A stretch of DNA of 64,000 bases, from the IMG/VR virus record IMGVR_UViG_3300029984_000001, positions 1 through 64,000 of that record, one strand, 5' to 3'. The position numbers and the translations under genes were made by a program. How positions within the stretch are numbered: the first letter of the stretch is position 1; the number at the start of each line of letters is the position of its first letter. Below are positions 282 through 37,091 of the stretch, piece after piece. Below the pieces are notes generated by a model, which was not told where the DNA came from, ran no database searches, and saw only the letters and a program-made list of their open reading frames with translations.

Positions 282-3200
282 TTAATTTCCTAATGCTAAG
301 TTTTCCATATCTTTCATTATTTCAGAAAGAGATATATCCTGATTGCTTTGAGTAGCCTTTTGAATTTTATTTAAAATGTTTTGTTTCTTCGATTGGATAT
401 CATTATTAGAACTAGTTTGTTTATTATCATTACCATTATCTGATAATAGTTTAACCATATCAGATATTGGTGTAGTATTTACACAAATATTAGTTAAAAT
501 AGTAATAACACTTTGTAAAAACTTCCCAATCTCAGGATTATCTTTAAGTGAAGATTGCGATTGGGTTTTAGTTATATTAGAATTATCTTCATTTTCTCCA
601 CCAATCCCATTATTATTTATTTCAAAAGTTCTTCTCATATAGGTATCTGGATTTACAGGAACTCCATTTTGTCTAGTTTCATAATGTAAATGTGGACCTG
701 TACTATTTCCTGTAGAACCAATATTTCCTATACCTTGACCTTCTTTTATACTATCTCCTGGTTTGAGATTGCTAGATTCATTCATGTGTCCAAAATAATG
801 TTCTCCACCAATAGCATCTTTCACAACTAATAAATTACCTAACCCGTTACTATCTTTAGTCGATTTATTTTGGACTACTGTTCCTGATATCGGAGATTTA
901 ATCGATGTGCCTTTAGCAGCTCCAATATCTATTCCAGTATGATTTTTAGGTATAGAACCAGTAGTATCTCTAAGACCAAATCCAGAAGTAACATTACCTT
1001 TTAGACTATTACTAAAGAAATTCTCTATAGCTCCTCCAACACCTTTGTAAACAGCTCCACCTACAGAAGATCCTGTTAATACTCTTCTAATATCATATAT
1101 ATCATTTCTACTTGATAAGTCTGATATTTTCACAACATCTCCTGTTTTGGGTGCATGAATATATTTATCATCTCCAATATAAATACCAACATGAGATGGT
1201 GGTGATGAACTCCCTTTGAATAATACTATATCTCCTGCTTGAATATCTTTTTGATCTACATGAAAACCAGCATTCTTTTGATCGTAAGTTGTTCTACCAA
1301 CATCTATTCCCATTTTATTAAATACATATTGAACAAATCCTGAACAATCAAAACCATTAGGAGTCGTTCCTCCCCATAAATATGGAGTGCCTAAGAAACT
1401 TTGAGCTATCTTTATAACTTCTCCTGGTTTACCTGAAACAGTTGTTCCTGAACTACTATTACCAATAGAAGAACTGTTTGCATCTTTATTAAATCCAAAT
1501 ATATTGTTCATAGAGTTACCGATAGCACCACTTAGATCACTAAAAAATCCTGCAATCCCATTAGAACTACTTGAACTACTATTAGTACTAGATGATATAC
1601 CTGTTGCAGCTGGATTATTTGGTGTAGTATCACCTGTAGCCTTTTTATATAATGAAGTTACTGTTGGAACCCAATCTTTATTTTGACCATTTGGATCATT
1701 GGCTGCTCCTATTGGTGCGTATTTTGAACCTATTTGATCAATAGTAGTTAAACCTTTCTTTATATAATTATCACCCAAATTCTTAATTGCAAAATCTAAT
1801 CCTTCATTTAATGAATCGAAATGTTTTATTGTTTTCCAATTATTATTCCAATCCATTATACCTGCTGGATTATTATCATTGTTTAAAGCAGGACTATTTC
1901 CACCAGTTTCATTTATCATGATAGATGCAGCTAATGATGGATCTACTCCATATTTTTTTCCTAAGTCTATATATGTTTGACCCATTCCTGATAACTTACC
2001 TCTTAATATAGCATTAACACCATCAGAAGTAGATTCTCCTCCAACACCATTAAATAACTTTTTAGATTCATTAGCACCACCTACATTTTGCCATGGTAAA
2101 TTTCCAGTATATTTAGCTGATACACTATTATTATTATTATTATTAGATGATTGTGAATCTGTTGCTATGACTTTATTTTTATTTATATTTTGATAATCAA
2201 TTACACCTGGAGATACAGTTTCAACCTTATTGAATGGATTTACATTTTGAGAAGTAGGTTGGTCTTGTTTATTAATATAATCTTGATATTTATCTATTTT
2301 TGTATCGGTCATAGAATTAACTATATATTTTCCTTTTCCTTTGTTTTTATTAATATAGTCTTCCATAGATATATCAACATTATTTTTCTTTTTATAATCT
2401 TCATATTCTTGTCTAGCTTTTTCACGTTGTTGTTGTAGATCAGTGTTATCTATTCCAAATATAGGTAATAATGTATCGAATATTAAATCTATCAAGAATG
2501 AATCAGGTAAAAATGATAGAATTATAGTCAATCCAGTTAAAGCTTTCATAAGACCACAACCAACTTTTTCTAAGAATGTTGGTTCTTCTGTGATACCCAA
2601 TATAGTTTGAGCATTAGAATAACCCATTACAAAGTCCACAATAGCAAGGGCTATATTTAATACTCCACCAGTAGATAAACCAGCTAATCTAGCAGATACC
2701 TTTGTTATATTCGCTGCTATTTTTTGAGTCAATCCGCTTAAGAATTTAGGAATAAATTTTTCTACAATCTTTACGGTTCTTTCTGTACCTACAAGAGCTT
2801 CGATTTCAGGATTACTAACTAAATTAAATAAGAATTTTTTTATACTTTCCATAGCTCCACTCAATGCTTTATCCATACCAATTCCTTTATATACAGAATT
2901 CATAATTCCACCAGATTTTGCTATGAAATTGGTACTTTTTTCTACTAATGAACCTGCCCCTCTTGTGATATTTCCTAATTTAGATGCAGTATTTGTCCCC
3001 ATTATAGTTTTTAAAGGATGAAGCATATTCTTTCCTAAATCAAAACCTTTACCAATAATTCTAGATGATTTATTAGCTAACCATCCAAATCCTTTTAATG
3101 CTTTGGTTCCTGTAGCTCCACCAGTTAATATATATCTACTAATAGCTTTAGTTCCATTACCAATCTCATTATATTTTTCCCCTGTTATAGAATCTGTATG

Positions 3201-6200
3201 AGATTCACCAAAAATAGAATTAGAAACAGTAGACCCAACATCACTACTATTAGATTTATATATTTTACTGTTATTCTTTAGACTATTATTATCAGAATCT
3301 TTTATAGGACTAAGTCCAGGTAAATGAGCTAATGTAGAATTATAAAATTGAGTTAAGAATCCTTTAAATCCATTTAGAATGAATCCACCTATACCAAGTA
3401 CACCTTCTTTAACAACTGCACCTATACCACTTACAACAGCAGGTATAATTGTTCCAGTAATGAATGGGACTACTTTATCTTTTAAATATGGTATTACTGT
3501 AGATTTAGCAAATCCAATTAATTGTGGAGCGAAGGCAAACCCTAACATTCCTTTCATTAATGTAGATGCTATACCAACGGTTTTTAAATCTGTAGAATTT
3601 GATATAAAATCAGCAGCTTTACCCCTAACTTTTTCAACATTTCTAGATAAAAATGTCATCATTTTATTTTTATAAACTTTATCTTGTTTATTATCTCTTT
3701 CAACTTCTTGAGTTTGTATATCACCTTTATTATAGATTTTATTATTATTACCATCTATATGATATTCCCTACCATCCTCATCTCTTTGATTCTTATTAAC
3801 ATTTCCTTTAAGATTATATTTAGAAGGCATTGATATCAGATTTGGTTTTTTATTAATTTCCTTTGTATCATATGATAATTCATTTGCATCTATCTCTTCT
3901 TTGGTTACATATTCCTTTTCACCTCTCGTATTCATATAATATAATCTATTATCAGAATCTTTCAATATTTTCTTTTTCTCTTTTGAATTATAAGAATCAA
4001 ATGCAGATAAAGCCCTATTTGAATTTGGAGATGGATGAGCTATATCATGTAATGTGGTAATAATTTCTTCCATTTTACTATTTATTTTTTCTCTAAATGT
4101 TTCACTTCTTTCTGATTCTTGTTCTTGTAATACTTCCATTCTTTCTTCTGGAGTTTTAGTTTCATTCTTTTTCTTATTTACATTAATTTCTTTATCTAAT
4201 AGATCTATATACTTCGATAATTTTTCAGGATTATTAAGTACACTATTAGGAATTTTAACACCAGATTTTTTTAATTTATCCATGAAATCCACATAAGATT
4301 CTGTTTGTTTATATCCTTTATCTACAGATGTATTATAATTATTAACTTTACTAGCAAGACTTCTTTTTAATGTTTCTTTTTCACCGTCAGACATATGTTT
4401 AGGATTAATATTATCAATCATTTTAAAGGCTATATCACTCTTGCCGTCCCTAATCAATTTCATAATCTTCTTAGATGTAAAGTATCCAACGTCTTTACTA
4501 ACATGCCCACCCATATCGTCTATCATAGATACTCTATCAGATTTATTCTTCTTATAATCTGTTCTCATATTAGAAAAACTATCTCTCATCATATTAAGTT
4601 TCTTAGAATCACCTTGAGTGAACCCGTCAATTAATTGATCAAATTCAGAGGTTTTATCTCCTAATCCCATTGCATGTTTTCTTCTAAAGTCTAATCTTTC
4701 AGAAGCAGTCATATAATCAGCAGTACCATTTTTTATTTGACGTTTTCTTAAACGATTACCAGCCATATTTATTAATCCTATAGGTGCTCCGATTAATCCC
4801 TTTAATGCCTTACTACTTATCCATGTTAATGCTTTACCTACAGGACCAGCGATTTGTGCTACTAACTTAGATAACGGTACACCTAAACTACTTTCAATTA
4901 TTTTATCAAATATTTTAAGAACACCTTTACCTAGACCTTTAGCCATTAATTCCATTTGTTTAGAGAATGGTTTTACAGATGTAGCTAATTTTTCGAACAC
5001 ATTCTTCTTAAACCACGTTACAGCTCCATCCCTTTTCTCTTTTAAAAAAGCAGACATAGGATCTACAATCTTTTCTCTAAAATGAGGTAATAGTCCACCG
5101 ATATATTTACCATGACCATCTGGTTTACCGAATATAAAGTTTTGGAATTTTTCTGATGTTGTAGCCATACCAATAGCAGAACCAAGAAAAGCATTTCCCA
5201 TAATACCAAATGGTAATGGACTTGCTATAGCAGCAACCAAAGCTCCTGCTCCAATTCTAGGCAACATTGATTTCATCTTTTCTTTCTTTTTACCTAACCA
5301 CGATTCATTATTTTTACCGAATAACCATTCTTTCATTCTACCAGTATCTTTAGCATAAGCAAAAGATGCACCTAACATAACTCCACCTATTGGACCAAAA
5401 GGCATAAATGGTAACAATCCTGCAACTCCACCCACAATTCCATAATTCTTTAAATCTGGCAATAACTTCTTCATTTTATTTACAAATTTACTACTTGTGG
5501 CTTTTGCGACGAATCCACCTTTACGTTGTTTATCCCCATTTTCATCAGTAAATTCCTCACCAAACAACCAGTTTTGCATTGTCTCAGAATGTTTAGTTAT
5601 AGATATTCCTGCTCCAATTGCAGCTCCTAATAATGGTCCACCTAACATTCCTGTGACTAAAGATACACCTGAACCTAGTAATGCTGAACCTATAGCTTCA
5701 GGAGCATAAGTTGTAATTCCTTTAGATGCTTCTGATATAAAATTAGATACTTTCTTCTTTTCTGCTAATATTTTCTCTGGAGTTAATTCTTCATTACCAT
5801 TAGTTAAACCAGAAAAGACTTTAGTAGCAGCATTCTTTAATTCACCTTTCATTTGGTCTAGATAATCTGTAAATATATTACCATCTTTAGAAGGGTTTTT
5901 TAATTCACCTAATACAGTTTTTAATATACCAGCATATTGATTATTTTTTTCTTGAGAAGAGAAAGATTCTTTTATCTTATCATGATTAATCATATTCAAC
6001 ATAGTAGACATTGTATCATTATAATCATCTGAATCTTGTTCTTTCCCTCGAAGCATATTCTTCATTTTTAAATGAGTTCTTTTTGCTATATCTTCATTAG
6101 ATACCTTATCACTATTTACATCATTAACAGAAGTCTTTATAAACTTTTTAAAGTTTCTCCATTGTTCTGCTTCTTTTACTGGAAGTACAGCCTCACCTCT

Positions 6201-9014
6201 ACTTATAACTGCTACAGTATCTTGATCTACATTATCTGTACCTGTTGCATAATGAGGAACTTCATTGTTCATATAATTATTTATAACTGTACCTATATCA
6301 CTAGAAAACGTTTCAGCAGCTCTATCTTCACCTCTATTTAATCCCGAAAATTTACCTTTTATTTTAGATGTAATTGGAGAAAATACTGTACCAAAAGCAT
6401 TTTTAGTAGAATCCCATGCTCCAGAGAATACAGATTTGATTCCTCTTCCTATTTCAGAAAATAAACCATCAACTCCATTTTCTTTACTACCAAATAAATA
6501 TTCTTTTACTTTTGCACCTAAATCTTTCAATCCAGTTCTTTCTAGAATATCATTTAGTTTATCTTTTATTCCAAGATCTTTTATTTTATCTGTTAGAGGA
6601 TCTATAACTCTTTCATCTAACCATGTAGAGAATTTATTGAAATTTTCTTTAAGTTTATCAATCATTACTGTTACAAAACTTCTATCATCAGCTTTTTCTC
6701 CAACACCGTAAATTAAACTATATAATTTATTATCTATTTTATCAAATACTCTAGACATTATTTGATTAGGTTTATCAACAATGGATTTAATTTTATCTGT
6801 CATAGTTTTAATTTTATCATAAGATGTACCCGTCTCATCTAGATCATTCATTATCTCATGTATAAAAGACGTCCTATTTTGTAATAATGAGTTTCTTCTA
6901 AACTCTTCTGTTTCCTTTACATTATAAATTTTACCAGCTACACCTCTTTGTAATTTATCAGAATCGTAATCAGTGGTATTAATAAGACCATGATTATCTT
7001 TAGCTTTTCTTTTAGTAACTTCATATGATGCTTCAGATCTTCTTCTAGTTTCTATTTCTCTTAAATCTTCAGTACTAGTTGAATTATTATCTGGAATATT
7101 ATATGTGTCTATATTTGGTGTTGTTAATGAAGTGCCTCTTCTTCTGCCAGTACTACTTGTATTATTACTTCTAATAAATCTTAACTCTCTTAATATTTGA
7201 TCCAAATACCAGAATCCACTATAACCTTTATCACTATTTACATTTAAAGGACTATTTTTATAGGTTAAAGTAGAATTTTTCTTCACATTTCCTTTTTCAT
7301 CTACTCTATAATCATCTTTACCAAATAGATTATTGTCAATAGTATTATAAACACTATTACCTTTATTCTCTATATCTGTAAGATGATTTTTCTGATCTGC
7401 TCTACTTCTCATTATATTTTGAGATAACATTTTCTTTGTATCTTGATTAGAACCTTCAAATAATCCTTTTATAATTTCATAATTATCCGAATCTTGTATA
7501 TTATAATAACTATGATCTAGATTTTTATTATTATATTCAAATAATATACCTTTATCATAAATAGTATTCAACATACTCTTCATATCTTTAAATAAAGATT
7601 CTTGTTCAGAGTAAGTTAGATTTATATACTTAGACATTTCTTTCATTTCATTTTCTATATCTCTTGTAGCTGAATCAGCATAACCTTGTTTTAGATTATC
7701 AAAATTCTTTTTGATTTGATGTTGTTCTACAAAAGTTCCTTTTTCATGATCAAATATCTGAGCAGGCATACCAGATAATAACGAAATTATTTTTGCTAAT
7801 TGTTGTGGTATTACATCATTTAAAGTTTTATCAGAAATTCCATTCCATTTCATTTCACCTCTATGGTATTTAGCAGGAGATAATGATTTTTTTAAACCAG
7901 TATCAGGAGAGAATATTTTTGTTAATTCTCTAATTTTATCAGTGAATGGATTATCTCCTCTATCTTCATCTGTAAACCCATTTAGTTTAGCTGTTAATGA
8001 TCCGAATAGAGATGACGCAGTTTTATCTATCTTCCCCATACTCTTCTTCAAACCGTTACCTATTATGAATTTACTAACAAAACCCTCCATAAGCATACCT
8101 AAAGGATTAGCTGCCAACATCTTTAATACATTTGTATCATCACCCATAGAGTTTAAAGTAGATGTAATTAGACCTAAATCTGGATTGTTCATAACGTTTT
8201 CTTTTACATGTGAAAAATATTCTTTTATATCTGGAATACCACCAATAGCAATATCAGAATAAGATTTCTTTTTCTTAGATTCTTTCTTTTCTGGACCAAT
8301 AATAGTATTCATTTTAGTAGATATTTCTCTTAATAAAGCCGTTTGATCTTGAAGTAACTTGGTAGACTCTTCATAATATTTCTTTTGATTTTCTGCCATA
8401 CTTTTTGTAATATCAACAACAGGCATCATAGAACCTATATTATCATTTATAACTCCAAGATGTTTAGAAAACATTTGATTCGATTTAGTATTTTGCACAT
8501 ATAATAAATTAGTATTTTCTTTTGATACTTGAGTAGAGTATTCTGTTGATCTAACTATTGCTGAACTTATTGCATTAGCATTTGCTTCTGATGATTGATG
8601 AATGTTACTGGATATCATATTATCATTAGAAGGACTAGGAGAATCATTAAAATCTTCATCATCAAAATTAAAATTATCTAACCCTTCAAATTCATCATCA
8701 AAATTCATTCCTGATTGTTCAGCAGATATTTGATCTATTCTTTTAGTATTATAAAAAGTACCATCTCTTAAATCTTCCATAAGAGATTTTTTTAATTGTT
8801 CACCAGCAGTATATACTTGTGATTTTTTAGTATAATCCATCATCCTTTTATATGTTTGTTTATAATTAATAATATCAGAATAGGCTGATCTGAATAAATC
8901 GGCATTAGTCTCTTTAAAATCTTTGACTGAAGACATATTTTCTGATACATGATTAACAGTAGCATATACTATAGATTTTGCAACATTAGTACTATACCCT
9001 AATAAATTAGCCAT
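282..9014 (-). CDS. Giant tail-associated/tape-measure-like protein with C-terminal glucosaminidase/lysozyme-like (approx 1638-2005), NlpC/P60 (approx 1080-1425) and M23 peptidase (approx 636-1004) domains
   Basis: GTPYLWGG..FDCSGFVQY..HVGIYIG (NlpC/P60); HTGIDIG..HYFGHM..STGPHLHYE (M23); YGVDPSLAASIMINETG..NNPAGI..IGSKYAP (glucosaminidase-like); HYATGT..GEAVLP tape-measure-type motif; GGAGG RBS. Confidence 0.85.
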   Translation of the reverse strand: MANLLGYSTNVAKSIVYATVNHVSENMSSVKDFKETNADLFRSAYSDIINYKQTYKRMMDYTKKSQVYTAGEQLKKSLMEDLRDGTFYNTKRIDQISAEQSGMNFDDEFEGLDNFNFDDEDFNDSPSPSNDNMISSNIHQSSEANANAISSAIVRSTEYSTQVSKENTNLLYVQNTKSNQMFSKHLGVINDNIGSMMPVVDITKSMAENQKKYYEESTKLLQDQTALLREISTKMNTIIGPEKKESKKKKSYSDIAIGGIPDIKEYFSHVKENVMNNPDLGLITSTLNSMGDDTNVLKMLAANPLGMLMEGFVSKFIIGNGLKKSMGKIDKTASSLFGSLTAKLNGFTDEDRGDNPFTDKIRELTKIFSPDTGLKKSLSPAKYHRGEMKWNGISDKTLNDVIPQQLAKIISLLSGMPAQIFDHEKGTFVEQHQIKKNFDNLKQGYADSATRDIENEMKEMSKYINLTYSEQESLFKDMKSMLNTIYDKGILFEYNNKNLDHSYYNIQDSDNYEIIKGLFEGSNQDTKKMLSQNIMRSRADQKNHLTDIENKGNSVYNTIDNNLFGKDDYRVDEKGNVKKNSTLTYKNSPLNVNSDKGYSGFWYLDQILRELRFIRSNNTSSTGRRRGTSLTTPNIDTYNIPDNNSTSTEDLREIETRRRSEASYEVTKRKAKDNHGLINTTDYDSDKLQRGVAGKIYNVKETEEFRRNSLLQNRTSFIHEIMNDLDETGTSYDKIKTMTDKIKSIVDKPNQIMSRVFDKIDNKLYSLIYGVGEKADDRSFVTVMIDKLKENFNKFSTWLDERVIDPLTDKIKDLGIKDKLNDILERTGLKDLGAKVKEYLFGSKENGVDGLFSEIGRGIKSVFSGAWDSTKNAFGTVFSPITSKIKGKFSGLNRGEDRAAETFSSDIGTVINNYMNNEVPHYATGTDNVDQDTVAVISRGEAVLPVKEAEQWRNFKKFIKTSVNDVNSDKVSNEDIAKRTHLKMKNMLRGKEQDSDDYNDTMSTMLNMINHDKIKESFSSQEKNNQYAGILKTVLGELKNPSKDGNIFTDYLDQMKGELKNAATKVFSGLTNGNEELTPEKILAEKKKVSNFISEASKGITTYAPEAIGSALLGSGVSLVTGMLGGPLLGAAIGAGISITKHSETMQNWLFGEEFTDENGDKQRKGGFVAKATSSKFVNKMKKLLPDLKNYGIVGGVAGLLPFMPFGPIGGVMLGASFAYAKDTGRMKEWLFGKNNESWLGKKKEKMKSMLPRIGAGALVAAIASPLPFGIMGNAFLGSAIGMATTSEKFQNFIFGKPDGHGKYIGGLLPHFREKIVDPMSAFLKEKRDGAVTWFKKNVFEKLATSVKPFSKQMELMAKGLGKGVLKIFDKIIESSLGVPLSKLVAQIAGPVGKALTWISSKALKGLIGAPIGLINMAGNRLRKRQIKNGTADYMTASERLDFRRKHAMGLGDKTSEFDQLIDGFTQGDSKKLNMMRDSFSNMRTDYKKNKSDRVSMIDDMGGHVSKDVGYFTSKKIMKLIRDGKSDIAFKMIDNINPKHMSDGEKETLKRSLASKVNNYNTSVDKGYKQTESYVDFMDKLKKSGVKIPNSVLNNPEKLSKYIDLLDKEINVNKKKNETKTPEERMEVLQEQESERSETFREKINSKMEEIITTLHDIAHPSPNSNRALSAFDSYNSKEKKKILKDSDNRLYYMNTRGEKEYVTKEEIDANELSYDTKEINKKPNLISMPSKYNLKGNVNKNQRDEDGREYHIDGNNNKIYNKGDIQTQEVERDNKQDKVYKNKMMTFLSRNVEKVRGKAADFISNSTDLKTVGIASTLMKGMLGFAFAPQLIGFAKSTVIPYLKDKVVPFITGTIIPAVVSGIGAVVKEGVLGIGGFILNGFKGFLTQFYNSTLAHLPGLSPIKDSDNNSLKNNSKIYKSNSSDVGSTVSNSIFGESHTDSITGEKYNEIGNGTKAISRYILTGGATGTKALKGFGWLANKSSRIIGKGFDLGKNMLHPLKTIMGTNTASKLGNITRGAGSLVEKSTNFIAKSGGIMNSVYKGIGMDKALSGAMESIKKFLFNLVSNPEIEALVGTERTVKIVEKFIPKFLSGLTQKIAANITKVSARLAGLSTGGVLNIALAIVDFVMGYSNAQTILGITEEPTFLEKVGCGLMKALTGLTIILSFLPDSFLIDLIFDTLLPIFGIDNTDLQQQREKARQEYEDYKKKNNVDISMEDYINKNKGKGKYIVNSMTDTKIDKYQDYINKQDQPTSQNVNPFNKVETVSPGVIDYQNINKNKVIATDSQSSNNNNNNSVSAKYTGNLPWQNVGGANESKKLFNGVGGESTSDGVNAILRGKLSGMGQTYIDLGKKYGVDPSLAASIMINETGGNSPALNNDNNPAGIMDWNNNWKTIKHFDSLNEGLDFAIKNLGDNYIKKGLTTIDQIGSKYAPIGAANDPNGQNKDWVPTVTSLYKKATGDTTPNNPAATGISSSTNSSSSSSNGIAGFFSDLSGAIGNSMNNIFGFNKDANSSSIGNSSSGTTVSGKPGEVIKIAQSFLGTPYLWGGTTPNGFDCSGFVQYVFNKMGIDVGRTTYDQKNAGFHVDQKDIQAGDIVLFKGSSSPPSHVGIYIGDDKYIHAPKTGDVVKISDLSSRNDIYDIRRVLTGSSVGGAVYKGVGGAIENFFSNSLKGNVTSGFGLRDTTGSIPKNHTGIDIGAAKGTSIKSPISGTVVQNKSTKDSNGLGNLLVVKDAIGGEHYFGHMNESSNLKPGDSIKEGQGIGNIGSTGNSTGPHLHYETRQNGVPVNPDTYMRRTFEINNNGIGGENEDNSNITKTQSQSSLKDNPEIGKFLQSVITILTNICVNTTPISDMVKLLSDNGNDNKQTSSNNDIQSKKQNILNKIQKATQSNQDISLSEIMKDMENLALGN

Positions 9015-9107: not shown

Positions 9108-9611
9108 TTATTTAGAAATAACTCTGATACTTTTATGTTCTTTTACATCTACATAGATTGTTTCTCTGATATCTTCACCTTTTTCATCTATTCCGATTTT
9201 CTTTGATACATGTCTCATTCTTGCAGGAACTTCTTTTTGGGCAATAGAGATATCAGAATCTTTTCTTTTTCCTAATGACATTTTTCTACCTGTATCCATA
9301 TAAGTATTGACAAATTCTTTACTTACATTAATCATATGACCTGCATCATTTTTCGTATATTCATATTCGATAGCTAATTTCTCTGCTTCTGGTTGACTTA
9401 TACCTGTAGTCTTAGATATAATTCCTCCTACCATAGAATCCATTTCTTCTGCTGGACATATATAATCTTCTACTCCATCTTTTCCATATACCGCAGCTTT
9501 AAAAGAACGGTCGTTTAATAATTCTTTCATAACCAAATTTTCTTCTTTTACGTTTACAGATCTTTGTGTTCTTCTTCCTTGAACCTCTTGTATAATTTGT
9601 TCTACTGACAT
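9108..9611 (-). CDS. Hypothetical protein, possibly divergent HU/IHF-like DNA-binding protein
   Basis: GGAGG RBS; C-terminal half IISKTTGISQPEAEKL..TGRKMSLG..EVPARMRH..IYVDVKEHKSIRVIS echoes the HU pattern. Confidence 0.4.
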   Translation of the reverse strand: MSVEQIIQEVQGRRTQRSVNVKEENLVMKELLNDRSFKAAVYGKDGVEDYICPAEEMDSMVGGIISKTTGISQPEAEKLAIEYEYTKNDAGHMINVSKEFVNTYMDTGRKMSLGKRKDSDISIAQKEVPARMRHVSKKIGIDEKGEDIRETIYVDVKEHKSIRVISK

Positions 9612-9806: not shown

Positions 9807-9818
9807 TACTGCAATGTT
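9807..9818 (-). promoter_or_regulatory. Late-type promoter AACA-N6-TA
   Basis: Minus strand AACAttgcagTA 26 nt upstream of ATG 9781; divergent from the promoter at 9854. Confidence 0.6.
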
Positions 9819-9853
9819 TAGGTTAAGTTAAAAAAATATTTATTGAAAATCGA

Positions 9854-9865
9854 AACATGAGAATA
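9854..9865 (+). promoter_or_regulatory. Late-type promoter AACA-N6-TA for the RNAP beta gene
   Basis: AACAtgagaaTA just upstream of the AAGGAG RBS and ATG 9888. Confidence 0.6.
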
Positions 9866-9887
9866 ATAAGAAAGGAGTGAGTAGTTT

Positions 9888-12800
9888 ATGATATTTATAG
9901 ACGAAATAAAATCTCTTAAGTTGTATAATAAACCTTTTTATCTTCCTATTAATCTAAAAGATAAGAAGAGAGGAAGTTCTGTATTTCTTTTAGGTAGAAA
10001 TACCTATCCAGATGGTAGTGGTTATGCTGCTGCTGATATATTATCATCTAATCCATTACTTAATAAAAAATATTTCGAATCTTATTATATAGAAAAAGAT
10101 GTTACTTTCTATATAAATAATGAAGGTTATGTAATGGTTGATAAAATGTCGAAAGTGTTAAATGAAGATAGTTTAGATAAGTTATCAACTGTATTTGGTA
10201 CTGCATCATCATTAAGTATGAGACATTACAAGAATAATGGGACAGATGATGATCCTAATATCGACAAAGACGATAAAGGACAACCAAAATTAAAAGAAGG
10301 CGAAATAAATCCAGATGACACTAAAGACAACAAATTAAAAGCGGATGTATCTAAATCCGAGGACGCTGAACCAACAAATCCAAATAGTACAGATAGTAGT
10401 AATGATAATATAGATACAAATGAAGATGATAAATCTAAATTAAAACAAGATTCAAGAATAAATATATGGGATGAATTAGATAAGGTAGAAGAAAAAGGTG
10501 GAAATAAACATGAATTAATATTTGAATTAACATTCAAAGATTATGATAATAATTATGAATCTCCACGTTCTAGAAATAGTTTATCTAAATATTCTTCTAT
10601 TAAAATACATGATAGTTCCCAATTTAAACATGTTAGAATAGGTAAGAATTATAACGGAAAAGCTTTTTATGATGGAGATGCTTTAGTGGGATATGTAAAT
10701 GTAAATAAAGATAATAATACTATTCAGGCTATGGAAGTGTCTAAAGAGTATCAAGGAACTGGTTTAGGTTCTCAAATATTAAATTTTGCTATAAAAAACC
10801 TCAATGCGACGAATCTTACTGTAAATAAAAAGAATAAAGTTGCTATTAATATGTACAAAAAAAGTGGTTTTGAAAGTTATGATGAGACTGAATATATGTG
10901 GTTTATGAAATTAAATAATAGTAAAGTTGTAAAAGAACAAGTTATGAATGAGTTTTCTAGTTATGAAATGATAAGTGATTTTATGGGTATGATTAAACAA
11001 GCTAAAATAGATGCTTATAATAAAGAATGTCAAGAAAGAGCTTTACAAAATAGATTGATGTTAGAAAATGGAGTTATATCTGAAGGTAATTTTGAGCAAG
11101 AATTAGTTCCAGACGAATTTATAGGTAAAATAGAAGACTCTCTTACTGGTGGTTTCATAGAGTTTGTAAAAGAAGATTGTTCTGTTGTGTTGGGAATTAA
11201 GAGTGAGTTAGAATATATGAATGAAAATATAAATTCTAGTTATAAAAATAAAATTCATAATCTATTATATAATGATAGATTTAAAACTCCTAAAGAAGTT
11301 TTAAATCAGTATGATACTGTAAAAGAAAAAAATTCTGATATAAAATATACTTATTTAAATTATGATAAATATGTTGGAAAAAACTTGTTTATAGATTTAT
11401 CTTTTTATAATGACTCTTTCTATAAAAATAATTCACTTACAAATGACAAAGCTGTAGATTTCTATATTGATTTTATAAAAAGATTAATATTAGATAAAAG
11501 ATTAGATGGTATTTATAATAAGAGAACTATACTTATACCGTTAGACCATGTTATAGAAGATAAGAGAGATTTAATTTATACTCAAAGTATAAATATATTA
11601 TCTTGTATTATAAGAATGATTAATGATAAACATCCTGATGGTTTATGGGATTTTAAAGGTATAGAATTTTTATTATTATCCAATAATGGATATATGAAAT
11701 TTGAACCTGATAAATTGACTAAAGAAGATATTCCTAAATTTGAAAGTCTATTAATAAAATTTGTCAATAAAGAACCGATAGTTGATGATAGTAACATAAA
11801 AGATTCACCGCAAGCTATAGTCGCTAATATATCGGATAAAATTGAAACTTCACAAGGTATTAAGATACATAATCTTACAGGACAAAGTGGAGATAAGAAT
11901 ATAGATGATATAATTAATAAAGTATCAGATGTAGCATCTAAATCTATGTCAGAGGATGAAACTCTGGATAAATTAAATGATAATGATACAGATGATTTCA
12001 AGAATTTAGTTTTAAAAGCAGCTGTAACAAATGGTGAGGTAAAAATCAATGCAAGTAGACAAGCTAGATTAAATAAAGTACATGAAGAATTTATGAATGT
12101 AAAGATAAAGAATAAAACAGTAAAAGAATTATTATCTAAAGAAGATGAGAATAAGGAGTTACCCACTTTATCTTTAAATAATAAAATAGATACAGTAAAT
12201 GAGGAGTGGAATGATTTAAAATTTGTGAATTTCAATACTGTGTATGATATAAATAAAGATATAGTAGATATTCTAAATTCATTATCTACTAAGAAAAATC
12301 CTATTATGGTTAGGGATATACAAATAGAAGATACATCAACTTCTGAAGATATGGTGGAGACATGGACTGTTAAAATGGAAGATGCACATGGTCAAAGATT
12401 TAGTTTCGTATTTGAATTACCTAAATTTAAAGATAAAAGTTCATTATTTCTAAGAGGTAATAAGAAAAAGATCTCTGGACAATATGTATTAATCCCTATA
12501 TCTAAAACAGATGTTTATACAGCTCAAATTGTATCTAATTATAAAAAGATATTTATTAGAAGATTTGGATTGTCTGCTCCAGGAAAATCTTATCCAACTG
12601 CTGATTTGATTTATAAAACTTTATCTAAAAACGAATTTAAAGGATTAAAAATAACTCCAGGAGATAATACTAAAATATCTAATAAGTATGATCTTCCAAT
12701 GGATTATATAGATTTAGCTACTATATATTCTACAATAGAAACACCTAATACTATTATATATTTTAATCAAGATGAAATTAATAAAAAATATAAAGATAAA

Positions 12801-15116
12801 ATAGATAATAATAAAGGTTTACCATTTGCTGTAAATAAATCTAATAATAATATTATATATTGGAATGATAATGTTGTATTATCTGATATGATTTCTACTC
12901 AAATAAGTGTAGATATAAAAGATTATAAAGAATCTTTTGATTTACAAAAAACTAGTACTAAATACCATTATTCACAAGCAAGTATACTAGCATCAAAAAT
13001 TCCATTAATTGTTGTATTAGGTTACAATGAGGGTTTAACAAAAGTATTAGATAAATCAAAGATAGTATATAATATGCAAGAAAAAAGACCTTCTATAAAT
13101 AATACATTTGAAGATTACATAAAGTTTAAAGATGGATATATCGTCTATACCTTAACTTATGATTCTTCATTATTAATGAATGGGTTGAAAGAATGTAATA
13201 CAGAGGACTATTCTTTAACTGAAATAGATAATCCTACGATGTTTTTAGATTTCTTAGATATTTATGGAGGTAGAATATTAGCCGATGGTCTGGATAACTT
13301 TTATGAGTTAATGATAGATGGGATAACAGAAGATGTATTAGAAAGATATAATTTACCGACAGATTATGTTACACTTTGCTTACTAGCAAATAAATTGTTA
13401 GTGGATAATAAGTATATAGCTCATACTAATCCTGAAAGTAATCGTTATAGAAGTAATGAATTACTAGCTGGTTATGCGTATCAATGTATAGCTACGTCTT
13501 ATGGTGATTATAAGACATTTATTAAAAAGGGTAAGACTAAACCTATGACTATGAAGAGAACAGCTATTATAGATGCTATATTATTAGACTCAACTTGTGG
13601 GGATAAATCTGTATTAAATGAAATAATGGATTGGGAAGATGAATGTGCTTTATCTCATAAAGGTCTATCTGGTATGAACAATGATAGATCATATTCTTTA
13701 GATAAGAGAACTTATAATAAAAATATGATTAATCTTGTAGCTATGTCTACTGGATTTGCTGGTAATGTTGGAGTTAATCGTTCTTGTACAATAGATTCTA
13801 ATGTTCAAGGGAAAAGGGGATATCTTAAAATAGATCATAATGAGGATCAGTATTCTATTACCAAGACATTTTGTCCTACAGAAGCATTGACTCCTTATGG
13901 AACTACTTCTGATGATCCTTTTAGATCAGCTATGACATTTATACAAACAGGTTCTCATAGTATGAGAGTTAAAAAAGGTATGCCTAATTTAGTTACTAAT
14001 GGAGCAGACCAAGCGATGCCTTACTTTACATCAAACACATTCTCTTATAATTGTAAAGCTGATGGTGAGGTTGCAGAATTAACAGATTCATATATGGTGT
14101 TGAGATATAAAGATGGTACTCATGAATTTATAAGTTTAGAAGAAAAGGTAGAAAAGAACTCTAATGGTGGTATTTATATTACTATTAAATTAGACCCTTG
14201 TGTTAAACAAGGTCAAAAAATAAAAGCTAAAGATATAGTTGCTTATGATAAATTATCATACTCTAATAAAGTTGGGGATGGACGTAATCCTGCCTACTCT
14301 GGTTATGTAATATGTAAAATGGCTGTAATGAATACTGAGGAAGGTTATGAAGATAGTACAGTCATTTCTGATTGGTTATCAGATGCAATGGCTTCTGATG
14401 TTGTAATAAAGAAAGAAGTTATAATACCTAAAGATTCTAATATTCTTTCTATGGTAAAGAAAGGTCAACCTATTAAAGAAGGAGATTCTTTAATGGTATT
14501 CCAAAATGCATATGATCAAGAGGATGTAAATATATTATTAAAGAATTTATCCGATGATGAGGATGGTATTTCTGAATTAGGAAGAATTCCAATTAAATCT
14601 CATGTTGAAGGAATTGTACAAGATATAAAGATTTCTAGAACAGTAGAAATAGATCAATTATCTGAATCATTACAAAAAATAGTTAAAGCGTATGAAAAAC
14701 CAATTAGAGATAAAAAACAAATATTAAGTAAATATGATATTCCTAATAATGGTTTATTAGATGCCGATTATAAATTAGATAGTACTGGTAAATTGAAGAA
14801 TGTAGATGAAGGTTTATTAATAGAAATATTCTGTAAGTATGAAGATAAGCTATCTACAGGTGATAAGCAGGTGGCATACTCAGCATTAAAAGGAGTAGTT
14901 AAAGGAATGTATCCAAAAGGGATGGAACCTTTCAGTGAATTTAGACCTGATGAGAAAATACATACAATTACCGCTGTGGAAGGAATTTTAGCTCGTATGA
15001 TTGGCAGCCTTGAAAAAGTAGGTAGTATAAATAAAGGTTTAATAGAATTGGATAGATTGGTTAAAGACAAACTAGGAATTAAATGGAAATATCTAGAAGA
15101 GATGATGGAAAACTAA
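9888..15116 (+). CDS. rpoB: Split multisubunit RNA polymerase beta subunit (likely virion RNAP) with a long N-terminal extension containing a GNAT domain
   Basis: FELPKF..LRGNKKKISGQ; ALTPYGTTSDDPFRSAMTFIQ (cf. [20 protein letters not shown]); VMNTEEGYEDS (cf. GYNFEDS); GDK..LKGVV (cf. GDK..NKGVI). Ends before the bacterial beta C-terminal clamp segment, as in phiKZ/AR9-type split RNAPs. Confidence 0.92.
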   Translation: MIFIDEIKSLKLYNKPFYLPINLKDKKRGSSVFLLGRNTYPDGSGYAAADILSSNPLLNKKYFESYYIEKDVTFYINNEGYVMVDKMSKVLNEDSLDKLSTVFGTASSLSMRHYKNNGTDDDPNIDKDDKGQPKLKEGEINPDDTKDNKLKADVSKSEDAEPTNPNSTDSSNDNIDTNEDDKSKLKQDSRINIWDELDKVEEKGGNKHELIFELTFKDYDNNYESPRSRNSLSKYSSIKIHDSSQFKHVRIGKNYNGKAFYDGDALVGYVNVNKDNNTIQAMEVSKEYQGTGLGSQILNFAIKNLNATNLTVNKKNKVAINMYKKSGFESYDETEYMWFMKLNNSKVVKEQVMNEFSSYEMISDFMGMIKQAKIDAYNKECQERALQNRLMLENGVISEGNFEQELVPDEFIGKIEDSLTGGFIEFVKEDCSVVLGIKSELEYMNENINSSYKNKIHNLLYNDRFKTPKEVLNQYDTVKEKNSDIKYTYLNYDKYVGKNLFIDLSFYNDSFYKNNSLTNDKAVDFYIDFIKRLILDKRLDGIYNKRTILIPLDHVIEDKRDLIYTQSINILSCIIRMINDKHPDGLWDFKGIEFLLLSNNGYMKFEPDKLTKEDIPKFESLLIKFVNKEPIVDDSNIKDSPQAIVANISDKIETSQGIKIHNLTGQSGDKNIDDIINKVSDVASKSMSEDETLDKLNDNDTDDFKNLVLKAAVTNGEVKINASRQARLNKVHEEFMNVKIKNKTVKELLSKEDENKELPTLSLNNKIDTVNEEWNDLKFVNFNTVYDINKDIVDILNSLSTKKNPIMVRDIQIEDTSTSEDMVETWTVKMEDAHGQRFSFVFELPKFKDKSSLFLRGNKKKISGQYVLIPISKTDVYTAQIVSNYKKIFIRRFGLSAPGKSYPTADLIYKTLSKNEFKGLKITPGDNTKISNKYDLPMDYIDLATIYSTIETPNTIIYFNQDEINKKYKDKIDNNKGLPFAVNKSNNNIIYWNDNVVLSDMISTQISVDIKDYKESFDLQKTSTKYHYSQASILASKIPLIVVLGYNEGLTKVLDKSKIVYNMQEKRPSINNTFEDYIKFKDGYIVYTLTYDSSLLMNGLKECNTEDYSLTEIDNPTMFLDFLDIYGGRILADGLDNFYELMIDGITEDVLERYNLPTDYVTLCLLANKLLVDNKYIAHTNPESNRYRSNELLAGYAYQCIATSYGDYKTFIKKGKTKPMTMKRTAIIDAILLDSTCGDKSVLNEIMDWEDECALSHKGLSGMNNDRSYSLDKRTYNKNMINLVAMSTGFAGNVGVNRSCTIDSNVQGKRGYLKIDHNEDQYSITKTFCPTEALTPYGTTSDDPFRSAMTFIQTGSHSMRVKKGMPNLVTNGADQAMPYFTSNTFSYNCKADGEVAELTDSYMVLRYKDGTHEFISLEEKVEKNSNGGIYITIKLDPCVKQGQKIKAKDIVAYDKLSYSNKVGDGRNPAYSGYVICKMAVMNTEEGYEDSTVISDWLSDAMASDVVIKKEVIIPKDSNILSMVKKGQPIKEGDSLMVFQNAYDQEDVNILLKNLSDDEDGISELGRIPIKSHVEGIVQDIKISRTVEIDQLSESLQKIVKAYEKPIRDKKQILSKYDIPNNGLLDADYKLDSTGKLKNVDEGLLIEIFCKYEDKLSTGDKQVAYSALKGVVKGMYPKGMEPFSEFRPDEKIHTITAVEGILARMIGSLEKVGSINKGLIELDRLVKDKLGIKWKYLEEMMEN

Positions 15117-15131
15117 TAATGCAATAACTTA

Positions 15132-15157
15132 ATATAGGAGGGAAAACCCTCCTATAT
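15132..15157 (+). terminator. Intrinsic terminator
   Basis: 11-bp stem ATATAGGAGGG/CCCTCCTATAT with AAAA loop, followed by ATTTT. Confidence 0.8.
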
Positions 15158-30508: not shown

Positions 30509-31018
30509 GATCAATACGGTGGAGTAAGTATTCCTGATCTAGATAATACGTTAGGATTCTTTGTAAATCTAACAAAAGCAGAAATTCTAGAAGAAATGAA
30601 TGAAGATGAAACAGAAGTAACAAAAGACAAATTAGATAGAAAAGTAAGAAAGAAAACTAGACAAGCTATGCAAGGTATTTGTTATAATCTTAATACAATG
30701 CATTCAAGAGCTGGTTCACAAGTTCCTTTCTCTTCAGTTAATTTAGGATTACCTTTAGATGATGACGCTGCATTAGTGTGTGAGTTATTTTTAGAAGAAT
30801 TTGATAAAGGAATGGGAAAAGGAAGTCCTCTAATTTTTCCTAATGTTGTCTTTACTGTTAAAGATGGTGTAAATAGGAAAGAAGGAGACCCTTATTATTA
30901 TCTATATAAATTAGCATGTAAAGTTGCATCTAAGAAGATGAATCCAACTTTCTTAAATATAGATGCTGATTTTAATTTAGAATATTATAATAAAGGTATT
31001 GTTGCACAAACTATGGGT
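30509..31018 (+). CDS. nrdD: NrdD exon 2
   Basis: DQYGG..NLNTMHSRAGSQVPFSS..IFPN..AQTMG. Confidence 0.92.
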
Positions 31019-31464
31019 TAGGTTACGAGCAGCCCATATAAAACCTCATGAACCTAGAAATCTAGGGTGTATATACGAGTCTAGAAGTATATGCTAACGG
31101 TAGAAGTTGAATAAGATTGGTTATAGAAAAGTGATTATAACCCTACTAGAAATAGTAGTCCATAAACGAAGTAGCTTCGTAAGAGAGCCTAAGGTCCTTT
31201 TTTAATAAGGATAGCTAGGGAATACCGTGTCTGTTAATATAATTTTTATTATAAAAATGAGATGTAACGACTAGTTGAAATCTATATATCAGAGAGAAAT
31301 ACTTTGATTGAAAATAAGGTATAATTAACATTATACACGAAGAAAGTAGACGTAGCAAGAAACTCGGTGAAAGTCCGTAATGCGAAGTATGAGGCTTATT
31401 ATATATGGTAACAGTATATAATAATGAAGAGATAGTCTGTTTAATATTAAAATATTATTAAGCG
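31019..31464 (+). mobile_element. Group I intron 2 in nrdD (446 nt, no ORF)
   Basis: Splicing joins TMG to CRTQVLS; perfect P1 AUGGGU/GCCCAU (G31032); P7 AACGACUA/UAGUCU; terminal G31464. Confidence 0.93.
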
Positions 31465-32433
31465 TGTCGTACTCAAGTATTGTCGAATATAAACGGGTCT
31501 GCTGGACCTACAGGTAGGGGGAATATTGGAAATACAACGATGAATCTACCAAGATTAGGAATCTTATCTAATAATGATATAGATAAATTCTTTGAATTAT
31601 TAACAAATTTATTAGAAGAATGTAAGAATTCCTTACTATATAGAAAAGATGTATTATCAAATCTAAAAGTAAAAGATCTACCATTTATAGCAGGGCAAGA
31701 ATTATTCTTAGGATCTGAAGGATTAAAAGAAACAGATTCTATATTACCTATATTAGAACAAGGAACTTATGGTATGGGATTTGTAGGGTTAGCAGAAACT
31801 CTAGTAGCTTTATTAGGAGTGCATCATGGACAAACATTAGAAGCTAGAGAATTAGGTGAAAAAATAAATGGTTTTATAAGAGAGAAAGCAGATTATTATA
31901 CTACTAAATACTCCTTAAATTTCAGTGCATATGCTTCTCCAGCTGAGGAAGTATCTGGGAAACTTTGTAAAAGTGATATAAAGAAATTTGGTATTATAGA
32001 GGGTGTAAATGATAAAGAATTCTATACAAATGGATTTCATATACCTGTAGATTTCCCTATATCAATTATGAATAAAATACAAATAGAAGCACCTTATCAT
32101 AAAATGTGTAATGGTGGTCATATATCATATATAGAGGTAGATGATTATCCAACTCCAAAATTAGTTGAAAAGGTTGTAACAAAATCATTCACTGAAACTA
32201 ATATAGCTTATATAGGAATCAACTTTCATATAAGATATTGTAAAGAATGTGGAACTCTTTTACATGGAGAATCAAAATGTGATTGTGGGTCTACTAGTAT
32301 TCAAGGTATTTCTAGACTTACAGGATATTTAGGTCTTGATGAAAGATTTGGAGAGACAAAATCAAAAGAAAGATCTTTAAGAATTAATCATAATTCAGAT
32401 CATGCAAAAGTATATAATAATGTAAAGAAATAA
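31465..32433 (+). CDS. nrdD: NrdD exon 3 (spliced product about 703 aa)
   Basis: CRT thiyl Cys, GRGN, GFVGLAE, YTNGFH, GGHISY, CKEC..CDC zinc site, SRLTGYLG glycyl-radical loop. Confidence 0.93.
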   Translation, partial: CRTQVLSNINGSAGPTGRGNIGNTTMNLPRLGILSNNDIDKFFELLTNLLEECKNSLLYRKDVLSNLKVKDLPFIAGQELFLGSEGLKETDSILPILEQGTYGMGFVGLAETLVALLGVHHGQTLEARELGEKINGFIREKADYYTTKYSLNFSAYASPAEEVSGKLCKSDIKKFGIIEGVNDKEFYTNGFHIPVDFPISIMNKIQIEAPYHKMCNGGHISYIEVDDYPTPKLVEKVVTKSFTETNIAYIGINFHIRYCKECGTLLHGESKCDCGSTSIQGISRLTGYLGLDERFGETKSKERSLRINHNSDHAKVYNNVKK

Positions 32434-33222: not shown

Positions 33223-34518
33223 ATGAGGGAGAGATTTATTATGTGTAAACAAAAAGACTTAGTACAACAATCAATTGAGGATAAAACATATTCAAATTTT
33301 CATGAGGCTATTAGAAAAATATTTACAAAAGAATACTTCTATAAAGATTATGTTGATAATTTTACTGAACATGAAAAAACTTTTTTAATTAATCTTAAAG
33401 ATTTAAGAGTAAGACTTAGAGAATTCAATTATCCAGTACATAATATAAGTAGGCTTGGTGAATATAATGATTATAAAGATATTTTTGTAGTATATCATGA
33501 AGCTGATATAGATGGTCATAGTGTAAAAATAATCAACGGTCTATTAAATAATGGTGATATGTCTAATACTTTTGGTTGTGATGTAAGAGCTGATGAAGCT
33601 TTTGATATTATAAAAGAAAAATTAGATGAAGGTATGTTTGTAATAGTTGCAGATTTAAACTTTACAGAAGAATATGCTGAAAGAGTAGAAAATGAATTAG
33701 ATACTTCAAGATTTATATTATTAGATCATCATGGACATGCTATGTATTTAAATCAATATGATTGGGCTTTTGTGTTATCTCATGATGAAGAAAGTTTATA
33801 TTTATCTTCTGGTACTTTATTGTATTCTATGTTTTGTGTTGCTAACTTTAATTGCAATTTAATATTAGATACAATAATAGATTTAGCAATGAATACTGCT
33901 TTGTATGATACTTGGTTCTGGTCTTCTAATTTTGATTATACTAGAGAATTATCTGAAAAGTATTTTGGTAATAGACCAGAAGATATATGTATGTTATTTA
34001 AATCTATGAGTAAAGATAAATATGCTCAACATGTTTTAAATAATATTAATAATTTTCATGATATATTTGATAATGATGATAAATTAAAAATAAAATTTAT
34101 GAGAGATATGACTAGAAAAACTATTTATAGATATTACCATAATATGAGAATAGTAAACATTGATGATAAAAAGATTGGAATAGTATTTGGAGATAATGAA
34201 GTTTCTGCTGTTGGTAATTTTATTTTAAGAGCTAATAGAGAATTATCTTATTTTGCTATGGTAAATTTAAATAGTAATCAAATATATCTTAGATGTAGAA
34301 ATGATTATGATGTAAAAGAAATTGCTATTAGGAATGGTGGAGGAGGTCATACTCAAGCTGCTGGATTCCCTATGATTGATATATTATTTAATGATAAATT
34401 CTTAATAGATTTATTATCAAAAACACATCAAGTAGAAGAAGATTGTTTAGCATCTATTAAAATGATAAAAGATTGTGCAGAATTTGATGAAGATACTAAA
34501 GTATATAGATTAAGATAA
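33223..34518 (+). CDS. DHH/DHHA1 phosphoesterase (nanoRNase/NrnB-like)
   Basis: YHEADIDG, ADLNF, LDHH, GGGHTQAAG. Confidence 0.88.
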   Translation: MRERFIMCKQKDLVQQSIEDKTYSNFHEAIRKIFTKEYFYKDYVDNFTEHEKTFLINLKDLRVRLREFNYPVHNISRLGEYNDYKDIFVVYHEADIDGHSVKIINGLLNNGDMSNTFGCDVRADEAFDIIKEKLDEGMFVIVADLNFTEEYAERVENELDTSRFILLDHHGHAMYLNQYDWAFVLSHDEESLYLSSGTLLYSMFCVANFNCNLILDTIIDLAMNTALYDTWFWSSNFDYTRELSEKYFGNRPEDICMLFKSMSKDKYAQHVLNNINNFHDIFDNDDKLKIKFMRDMTRKTIYRYYHNMRIVNIDDKKIGIVFGDNEVSAVGNFILRANRELSYFAMVNLNSNQIYLRCRNDYDVKEIAIRNGGGGHTQAAGFPMIDILFNDKFLIDLLSKTHQVEEDCLASIKMIKDCAEFDEDTKVYRLR

Positions 34519-37064: not shown

Positions 37065-37091
37065 TTTTAATTTATAGGAGTGTGTATTAAA

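Follow-up and report, generated by a model that had tools for sequence, protein, structure and literature searches.

Jumbo phages which encode their own polymerases serve as models of host-independent infection. To our knowledge, no virion RNA polymerase (RNAP) has been purified so far, and we know of no role assigned to the phage-specific N-terminal regions of virion RNAP subunits. The five virion RNAP subunits assemble before prohead entry, behave as ejection proteins and transcribe the early genes from the injected DNA (PMC5694885; PMC13282480). In Bacillus phages AR9, PBS1 and BpSp, an HD domain (phosphohydrolase) of unknown role is fused to the virion RNAP beta-C subunit (PMC7598289, PMC7824862). 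This was the only accessory enzyme described on these RNAPs in the searched literature, which covered jumbo-phage comparative genomics, multisubunit jumbo-phage RNAPs, polyvalent proteins and a 2026 review. Injected multidomain polyvalent proteins with RimI-like GNATs were described by Iyer et al. 2017 (PMC5512222). A 2021 survey (PMC7824862) presents T4 Alt, a packaged host-modifying ADP-ribosyltransferase which is injected with the DNA and affects host transcription, and cites Rac, a GNAT of the phiKMV group which acetylates the alpha subunit of host RNAP. The stretch studied here (the window) comprises positions 1 to 64,000 of IMG/VR record IMGVR_UViG_3300029984_000001. The gene at 9888..15116 (+ strand) of the window, which belongs to a jumbo phage from peat that is uncultured and has a genome of about 264 kb, encodes an RNAP beta subunit of 1742 aa with a GNAT acetyltransferase domain lodged in a variable slot of its N-terminal region. 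With a probability of roughly 55%, the GNAT is proposed to be a slot-borne effector which rides the virion polymerase into the host and acetylates a host amine at the start of infection.

The open reading frame (ORF) 9888..15116 is preceded by the Shine-Dalgarno sequence AAGGAG, 9 nt ahead of the ATG, and its start MIF[IL]D is kept in relatives. Its translation was assigned to a subunit of the beta-N/DPBB (double-psi beta-barrel) type by the match to phiKZ gp178 and by that to phrog_3148 'RNA polymerase beta subunit', which covered aa 640-1727 with an E-value of 4.6e-132. The protein begins with a conserved domain of small alpha/beta type, N1 (aa 1-78, 9888..10121), which is defined by the identity of homologues and by a predicted local distance difference test score (pLDDT) of about 85-90. 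It is followed by a disordered tether (aa 79-229, 10122..10574), the GNAT (aa 230-345, 10575..10922), a helical spacer with a low-confidence segment (aa 346-449, 10923..11234), a phage-specific 'mid' domain (aa 450-720, 11235..12047) and the beta-homologous core (aa 721-1742, 12048..15113), which extends into the DPBB region; all of these parts are read from the + strand. N1 was matched by no family in Pfam, PHROG or NCBIfam, and the mid domain by none in the family libraries searched.

In the AlphaFold2 model of aa 1-760, the pLDDT values were about 88 for N1, about 90 for the GNAT and 82-93 for the mid domain. The tether stayed below 50 at aa 79-220, a long helix at aa 359-393 reached 60-73, and aa 399-449 again stayed below 50. 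The GNAT is, in this model, a folded domain tethered between long flexible flanks. The D/K/N-rich linker that the preliminary description of this DNA had placed before the GNAT was recovered, as aa 111-205 consist of 20% D, 15% K and 12% N; in the segment-wise BLAST, aa 79-229 were matched by no homologue. A TADA2A-like Pfam match at aa 350-402 was below the threshold, fell on the predicted single long helix and was rejected as spurious.

The GNAT was recognised by four Pfam models above their gathering scores, which together cover aa 252-336. The best one, Acetyltransf_10, resulted in an E-value of 1.2e-11 and 45.2 bits (cut-off 23.6); the others were Acetyltransf_1 (1.9e-9, 38.2 bits, cut-off 20.7), Acetyltransf_7 (6.4e-9, 36.5 bits, cut-off 27) and FR47 (26.1 bits, cut-off 22.1). 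PHROGs acetyltransferase families matched aa 240-337. The earlier claim of a GNAT at 10600-10915 is borne out by these scores, and the peptide quoted for it corresponds to aa 265-328 (10680-10871). A separate AlphaFold2 model, for which an alignment of 58 GNAT subfamily members (A2, 30-50% identity) was the input, had a mean pLDDT of 85.5, with aa 230-345 above 90. The order of elements in this model is beta1, a short loop, beta2-beta3-beta4, alpha3, beta5, alpha4, beta6 and beta7. A Foldseek search with it against the PDB gave 233 matches at E<=1e-3, with SpeG, RimI, PaiA, HP0935 (a protein acetyltransferase), Naa60 and PseH at the top, so that the structural check suggested in the preliminary description also came out in favour of a GNAT. 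The best match among viral models was an 'acetyltransferase' within a 785-aa protein of an uncultured myovirus; the ESM Atlas search returned only the label 'GNAT', with some viral clusters. Altogether, aa 230-345 are identified by sequence and predicted fold as a GNAT, in a shortened variant.

Of the motifs that had been described as intact-looking, motif A is indeed kept, and so is the alpha4 tyrosine. Motif A, the acetyl-CoA pyrophosphate-binding loop Q/R-x-x-G-x-G/A between beta4 and alpha3 of GNATs, is represented by Q289-G-T-G-L-G294, which lies between the strand 278-284 and the helix 293-305 of the model, and the alpha4 tyrosine is Tyr323. The pattern Y.G.GLG is kept in the 58-member alignment, in which H248, E283 and N316 are, among other positions, nearly invariant. 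The retention of motif A, Tyr323, H248, E283 and N316 in 58 members argues for selection on GNAT activity.

The fusion was then compared with contigs assembled independently of the window. Logan contigs from two separate peat samples align to 9600-12332 and 9600-12034 without a single mismatch or gap; both begin on the 5' side of the start codon, pass through N1, linker and GNAT, and reach the conserved body. Two more samples gave shorter contigs that span the transitions from the linker to the GNAT and from the GNAT to the body, and at least 12 peat samples contain at least 85% of the sampled words of nt 9800-12200. The identical ORF is present on two IMG/VR contigs, L006 (the window's own) and L007, and the identical 1742-aa protein on 9 contigs, the longest of 263,666 bp; in P0025, a 1742-aa variant, only two residues differ (1404 and 1406). 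An assembly chimera which joined an acetyltransferase gene and a polymerase gene, the misassembly at the linker against which the first description had cautioned, is refuted by the contigs crossing every junction without mismatch, by the identical ORF on L006 and L007 and by the GNATs in the same slot of seven other family members; its probability is negligible. In the peat contigs, versions of 11227-11435 and 13088-13277 that are diverged by about 9-10% occur beside the identical sequence, and therefore related phage strains coexist in the peat samples.

The GNAT is one filling of a hypervariable slot between the conserved N1 and the conserved body. Relatives were collected by a word-indexed search with aa 1-720, which gave 23 full-length relatives, and by an IMG/VR scan with the N-terminal domain, which gave 23 loci including L006 and L007; all of these loci had complete ORFs, which were 1437-1765 aa long and lay mostly on contigs of 225-290 kb. 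In the segment-wise BLAST, N1 (aa 1 to about 80) was 35-56% identical in 22 of the 23 homologues, with or without cargo, mid (aa ~450-720) was 27-44% identical in all 23, and the core (aa 721-1742) was 41-57% identical to family members. The region from N1 to mid was common to no two distant relatives. The slot lengths were measured by BLAST against the cargo-less homologue P0010, which places the slot of the window's protein at about aa 84-405. Across 48 relatives, the slot ranged from 1 to about 1485 aa: it was 1 aa in P0010, 17-37 aa in sixteen proteins, 322 aa in the GNAT-bearing protein of the window, and 1185 and 1485 aa in P0009 and P0014, respectively, which were the longest.

The Pfam content was counted in the 28 slots of at least 80 aa. 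DUF6582 was present in 13 of them, GNAT in 8, NUDIX in 4, HAD in 2 and a P-loop kinase-like domain in 1. Several fillings were composite: the slot of P0004 contained two GNAT copies, that of P0009 a kinase-like domain, a GNAT and a NUDIX, and that of P0014 a GNAT, two NUDIX stretches and DUF6582. The comparison of orthologs for a variable insert, which the preliminary description had suggested, therefore resulted in slots that are empty or filled with GNAT, NUDIX, HAD, kinase-like or DUF6582 domains. Its placement of the GNAT in a long N-terminal extension was correct insofar as a phage-specific N-terminal region is present; a plain extension or a one-off fusion was not found, and the domain sits instead in a slot between conserved parts.

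On the core tree (46 rows), at least six changes in the presence of the GNAT were forced by well-supported branches, and the clustering of GNAT-bearing proteins was no greater than with shuffled labels. The nearest relatives of the window's protein on this tree included P0010 with its empty slot, P0005 with 68 aa, and the GNAT-bearing P0002 and P0162. A family-profile scan of a genome collection resulted in 5 relatives binned in metagenome-assembled genomes (MAGs), 0 of 5 with a GNAT. DUF6582 (PF20223), the commonest filling (e.g. P0013, P0014, P0017 and P0019-P0023; alignment A4), has a consensus of roughly L.D..FG.P..RKYPL....HV.SAI.FFN; it is absent from the window's own protein, and no mention of it was found in the searched literature.

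The same shortened GNAT also occurs as a module in other multi-enzyme proteins. An exhaustive phmmer search against 1.84 billion cluster representatives gave 887 proteins at E<=1e-3 and 214 at E<=1e-10. The carriers included solo proteins of 89-200 aa and, at the other extreme, proteins longer than 2000 aa; tandem copies, two per protein, were frequent, and 7 of the best 150 matches were members or fragments of the polymerase family described here. P0070 combines a phosphoesterase, two GNATs, a crotonase-like domain and HAD, and P0099 an endonuclease, a crotonase-like domain, two GNATs and a helicase; a census of 49 large carriers added NUDIX, HAD, P-loop kinase-like, SNF2 helicase and zinc-finger domains. 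Tandem pairs of the mini-GNAT were seen in giant multi-enzyme phage proteins (P0070, P0099, P0057 and others). The position of the mini-GNAT beside a crotonase-like (enoyl-CoA hydratase) domain in two cases hints at acyl-CoA chemistry beyond acetyl transfer. The GNAT-domain tree was weakly resolved, with 8 of 55 branches well supported, and polymerase-borne, solo and other-carrier GNATs were intermixed in it; by the well-supported branches, the polymerase-borne GNATs must have arisen at least twice. As far as the sequences resolve it, this tree is consistent with module shuffling.

The identity of the polymerase was studied by tblastn against 50,697 phage records. The matches came from 294 jumbo phages, always covered only aa ~723-1729 and had an identity of at most 31%; among the matches listed there was one per genome. 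Aa 1-720 had no match in these records, and the GNAT alone gave weak partial matches only, with at most 41% identity over 61% of the domain. No near-identical DNA was found in cultured phages. The sole AR9 match was the intron-split gene annotated 'virion RNAP subunit' (beta), and BLASTP aligned phiKZ gp178, which is a structural protein of the head and carries the annotation RNAP beta, with an E-value of 4e-37 over 900 columns. Positions 1019-1207 of the family profile matched bacterial beta ~570-744 and positions 1344-1408 matched Thermus beta 823-885, both with E-values of 2e-6 to 6e-6; weak Pfam RNA_pol_Rpb2_6 matches were detected in homologues. The solved chains of the non-virion RNAPs of phiKZ and AR9 were matched neither by the single sequence at E 10 nor by the family profile at E 0.01. 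No similarity was detected between phiKZ gp180 and either the GNAT-bearing gene or the 407-aa RNAP piece at 58365, for which it had been considered as a counterpart.

The gene neighbourhood points in the same direction. Divergent to the polymerase gene lies a gene for a 2910-aa virion-type protein (282..9014, - strand), with matches to tail, virion and peptidase families in PHROGs and to Pfam. It contains NLPC_P60 at aa 2542-2635 (E 3e-30), Peptidase_M23 at aa 2691-2789 (E 1e-25) and a weak glucosaminidase match at aa 2346-2442; the first ~2100 aa were matched by no family. In 12 of 21 related IMG/VR loci, a homologue of it is located upstream of the polymerase gene and encoded on the opposite strand. 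In phiKZ, the tail-associated lysin gp181 adjoins the virion RNAP genes gp178-gp180; the 2910-aa protein, whose gene has a position like that of gp181, is probably a giant lysin of the virion or associated with the tail. Between the two genes, a 167-aa ORF (9108..9611, - strand) without Pfam or PHROG match recurs in 13 of the 21 loci, where its homologues are 35-46% identical and precede the polymerase gene on its upstream side, and therefore appears to be a stable partner of the polymerase/lysin gene pair. The 407-aa protein at 58365..59588 (+) matches phrog_2962 'RNA polymerase beta subunit' and probably represents a further piece of the virion RNAP. Cultured jumbo phages have homologues of it that are annotated variously as beta or beta-prime, and in Staphylococcus phage SA1 one of them is located ~1.6 kb from the homologue of the GNAT-bearing gene.

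Because of the orthology with AR9 and phiKZ gp178 and the synteny with virion genes, the GNAT-bearing subunit most likely belongs to the virion polymerase. The beta identity given in the preliminary description, and the virion type that it considered as a condition, agree with phrog_3148, phiKZ gp178, the AR9 virion beta subunit and the synteny. If the subunit belonged instead to the non-virion polymerase, the GNAT would be uninjected and would act late inside the infected cell. The virion location is drawn from orthology and synteny, and the window contains another RNAP piece at 58365..59588, both of which leave some room for such an enzyme. However, AR9 and phiKZ are matched best, and solely, in their virion subunits, the solved non-virion enzymes show no similarity and the neighbourhood consists of virion genes, which makes a non-virion enzyme very improbable.

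The slot of this phage contains the disordered tether of ~150 aa, the compact GNAT of 115 aa and the helical spacer. In the proposed mechanism, the polymerase complex would assemble and then be loaded into the prohead; on infection it would be ejected with the DNA, and the tethered GNAT would enter before any phage gene is expressed. There, with acetyl-CoA of the host as the donor, it would N-acetylate a host amine. A protein amino group is the most likely target, because of the RimI-like affinity, and a small amine, for instance a polyamine, is a possible one; host takeover or counter-defence would result. The slot would then be an exchangeable effector bay, which in relatives holds NUDIX, HAD, P-loop kinase-like, DUF6582 or further GNAT domains or is empty. 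That a whole clade of jumbo phages uses the slot of the injected polymerase to carry exchangeable enzymes at time zero, disarming defences or remodelling metabolism, is put forward more tentatively, with slightly less than even odds.

The cargo could alternatively act in cis and serve early transcription. Its substrates would then be the polymerase, co-ejected phage proteins, the initiating nucleotides or the ends of nascent RNA, in analogy to the enzymes modifying RNA ends that eukaryotic and poxviral polymerases carry as tethered partners. The GNAT is covalently attached to the polymerase by long flexible linkers, and the NUDIX, HAD phosphatase and P-loop kinase-like domains of relatives match nucleotide and RNA-end enzymes. 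In contrast, the slot is empty in close relatives (1 aa in P0010), and the cargo is accordingly dispensable for transcription. The mini-GNAT family is also common as a solo gene and in multi-enzyme proteins other than polymerases, and its nearest structural relatives acetylate amines of proteins or polyamines. Action in cis is therefore considered improbable for the GNAT.

Several observations weigh against the delivery of an active acetyltransferase, and those on the enzyme are considered first. The best named relative, the RimI model TIGR01575, was matched with an E-value of 9e-11 and 42 bits, below its equivalog cut-off of 86.4; RimI, SpeG, Sat and PseH of NCBIfam were all far below their cut-offs and no equivalog was assigned. 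The sequence and fold matches in the PDB were generic GNATs. The substrate of the GNAT is not readable from homology, because no characterised equivalog was reached. In the phmmer alignment to the RimI-type structure 9mto, Tyr323 was aligned with the alpha4 Tyr, and Thr311 stood at the Glu position of the RimI L-E-V motif. The catalytic pair of RimI, as in the Salmonella enzyme, is the beta5 Glu and the alpha4 Tyr; with Thr311 aligned to the general-base Glu, the chemistry may differ or need a partner. The helices alpha1-alpha2, an arm that usually shapes the acceptor site of GNATs, are replaced in the model by the short loop aa 240-254.

The missing arm and the Thr aligned to the RimI Glu, together with a slot which tolerates 1 to 1485 aa, would suit an inactive passenger, i.e. 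a GNAT that is decaying or purely structural (a spacer, or a folding or packing aid). Against this stand the confidently predicted fold and the five features (motif A, Tyr323, H248, E283 and N316) kept across 58 diverged members. The form without alpha1-alpha2 is, moreover, common to the solo members of 120-165 aa; the lack of the arm is therefore a trait of the family and not local decay. A passenger without catalysis has, on this evidence, only a small probability.

The remaining points concern the delivery. The phage is uncultured, and the virion location of the subunit is deduced from orthology and synteny; for entry into the recipient cell with the DNA, the sole pointer is the virion RNAP orthology, from which it would follow. 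Neither an enzymatic insert in this subunit nor an RNAP-GNAT fusion was seen in any cultured phage. In 201phi2-1, a 275-aa N-terminal propeptide of the virion beta subunit is removed in the capsid by the prohead protease, with cleavage at TFE-275, whereas the orthologues of SPN3US and probably phiKZ are uncleaved (PMC5694885); the processing therefore varies between phages. A scan of aa 1-450 for [S/A/G]-x-E gave a single site outside the GNAT fold, SYE 358-360, which lies just after the GNAT, and none in N1 or the tether. By analogy with 201phi2-1, the GNAT could therefore be cut off at this site and be lost or freed.

In that case, the prohead protease would remove N1, the tether and the GNAT as a propeptide during head maturation, and the GNAT would not be on the ejected polymerase. 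It would act in the producing cell or the prohead, or become a separate internal protein, ejected or not; a fragment retained in the head would still be partly compatible with delivery. The variable processing of orthologues (PMC5694885) and the position of SYE 358-360 speak for removal. However, SYE is read with the phiKZ-type motif, which may not be the specificity of this clade's own protease, and it counts only as a lead. N1 is kept even in cargo-less relatives and the slot lies between conserved parts, which suits an integral domain with an insertion no less than a propeptide, and discarding an enzymatic cargo of up to 1485 aa would be costly. Removal as a propeptide is accordingly held to be unlikely, although it deserves serious attention, and the effector delivered on the polymerase is preferred.

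Some further features of the region and the window were determined. Directly after the stop codon of the polymerase gene, a strong intrinsic terminator-like hairpin (15132..15157, + strand) has a stem of 11 bp, of which 5 are G-C, followed by a tail rich in T; 4 terminator-like sites were found in the region versus 0.9 expected. The promoter scan of the region gave no more matches than shuffled sequence and was uninformative. An ORF of 317 aa at 31480..32433 (+) starts with TTG, and its match to the anaerobic ribonucleotide reductase NrdD is confined to the C-terminal half (405-715 of the 718 profile positions). The local G+C around it is 0.31, and a 141-aa ORF is located at 30596..31021; the NrdD-like ORF may be split, intron-interrupted or truncated. 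The adjacent ORFs 36042..37064 and 37080..38252 (+) encode paralogous AAA+/clamp-loader-like ATPases, both with phrog_7485 as the best match. Three further ORFs encode a DHH phosphoesterase-like protein (33223..34518), a hydrolase of the metallo-beta-lactamase fold (60566..61954) and an endolysin (50418..51437, - strand); the last is on the opposite strand where the GC skew flips locally (50-54 kb).

The host is weakly indicated to be a low-GC anaerobe, either of Gram-positive type or wall-less. The G+C of the window is about 25%, the 2910-aa neighbour has NlpC/P60 and M23 lysin domains, the window contains the fragment of an anaerobic ribonucleotide reductase, and the hosts of the best cultured relatives are Listeria, Staphylococcus, Bacillus and Fusobacterium. 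Family members were binned in MAGs named Izemoplasmatales, Solobacterium, Tenericutes and Clostridia, bin names being a weak hint of the host. One of them, the locus L028 (JAQUZN010000001.1, 246,077 bp), an entire contig of jumbo-phage size with a family member of ~1690 aa without a GNAT, is filed in a 'Candidatus Izemoplasmatales' MAG; this placement is either a host hint or a binning artefact.

Injected effector domains are an established idea, and the main new result of the present study is the variable slot in a virion RNAP subunit. In the 2021 survey (PMC7824862), this subunit is noted only for 'a unique N-terminal region', the nature of which is given as unknown. No published description of a GNAT or a variable enzymatic insert in a jumbo-phage RNAP subunit was found, with most subscription-journal papers outside the search. 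The statement of the preliminary description that no RNAP-GNAT fusion has been described is in line with the searched literature, although the concept has precedents in the polyvalent proteins, T4 Alt and the AR9 HD domain. If the proposal is true, the swapping insertion site would give the N-terminal region a function, the carriage of cargo, and would extend the idea of polyvalent proteins to a core transcription enzyme. Such a 'polyvalent RNA polymerase' would represent a delivery principle undescribed for multisubunit RNAPs. The slots would then also provide a catalogue of candidate time-zero effectors, comprising the mini-GNAT family with its hundreds of members, NUDIX, HAD and DUF6582. 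The slot may further serve as a naturally tolerated site at which jumbo-phage virions could be engineered to carry cargo.

Compared with the virion beta subunits of phiKZ (gp178), SPN3US (gp241) and AR9, the protein of the window has a homologous core at aa 721-1742, with ~31% identity to the virion beta of AR9/PBS1, virion genes as neighbours and, before the beta homology, an N-terminal region that is phage-specific. It differs from them in that the identity is only ~22-31% and that N1, the slot and mid have no detectable counterpart in cultured phages. The GNAT itself resembles those of RimI/SpeG type, which are its best sequence and structure matches (PDB 9mto, 5isv, 2cnm and 8fv1) and with which motif A and the alpha4 Tyr align; unlike them, it has no alpha1-alpha2 arm, Thr311 aligned to the general-base Glu of RimI, and its own conserved H248 and E283. 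With the AR9-type HD fusion it shares the position of an accessory enzymatic domain on a jumbo-phage virion RNAP subunit. However, the HD domain belongs to another enzyme class, is attached terminally to beta-C and not to beta-N, and is fixed in one clade without a variable slot.

T4 Alt is, as the slot GNAT would be, an enzyme carried in the capsid, whereas it is an ADP-ribosyltransferase and a separate protein with a capsid-targeting sequence. Rac is a phage GNAT as well, but a solo early gene product that is unpackaged. With the polyvalent proteins, the polymerase family shares unrelated enzymatic effector domains strung together (among them GNATs, RimI-like in the polyvalent proteins, and NUDIX neighbours), their repeated gain and loss, and the predicted packaging and injection with the DNA; the combination of unrelated domains with repeated gain and loss, by which polyvalent proteins are recognised, was found in this family. 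The carriers of the polyvalent domains are, in contrast, of MuF, portal-associated and relaxase type, whereas here a shortened GNAT without alpha1-alpha2 is carried in an internal slot of a catalytic subunit of a multisubunit RNAP.

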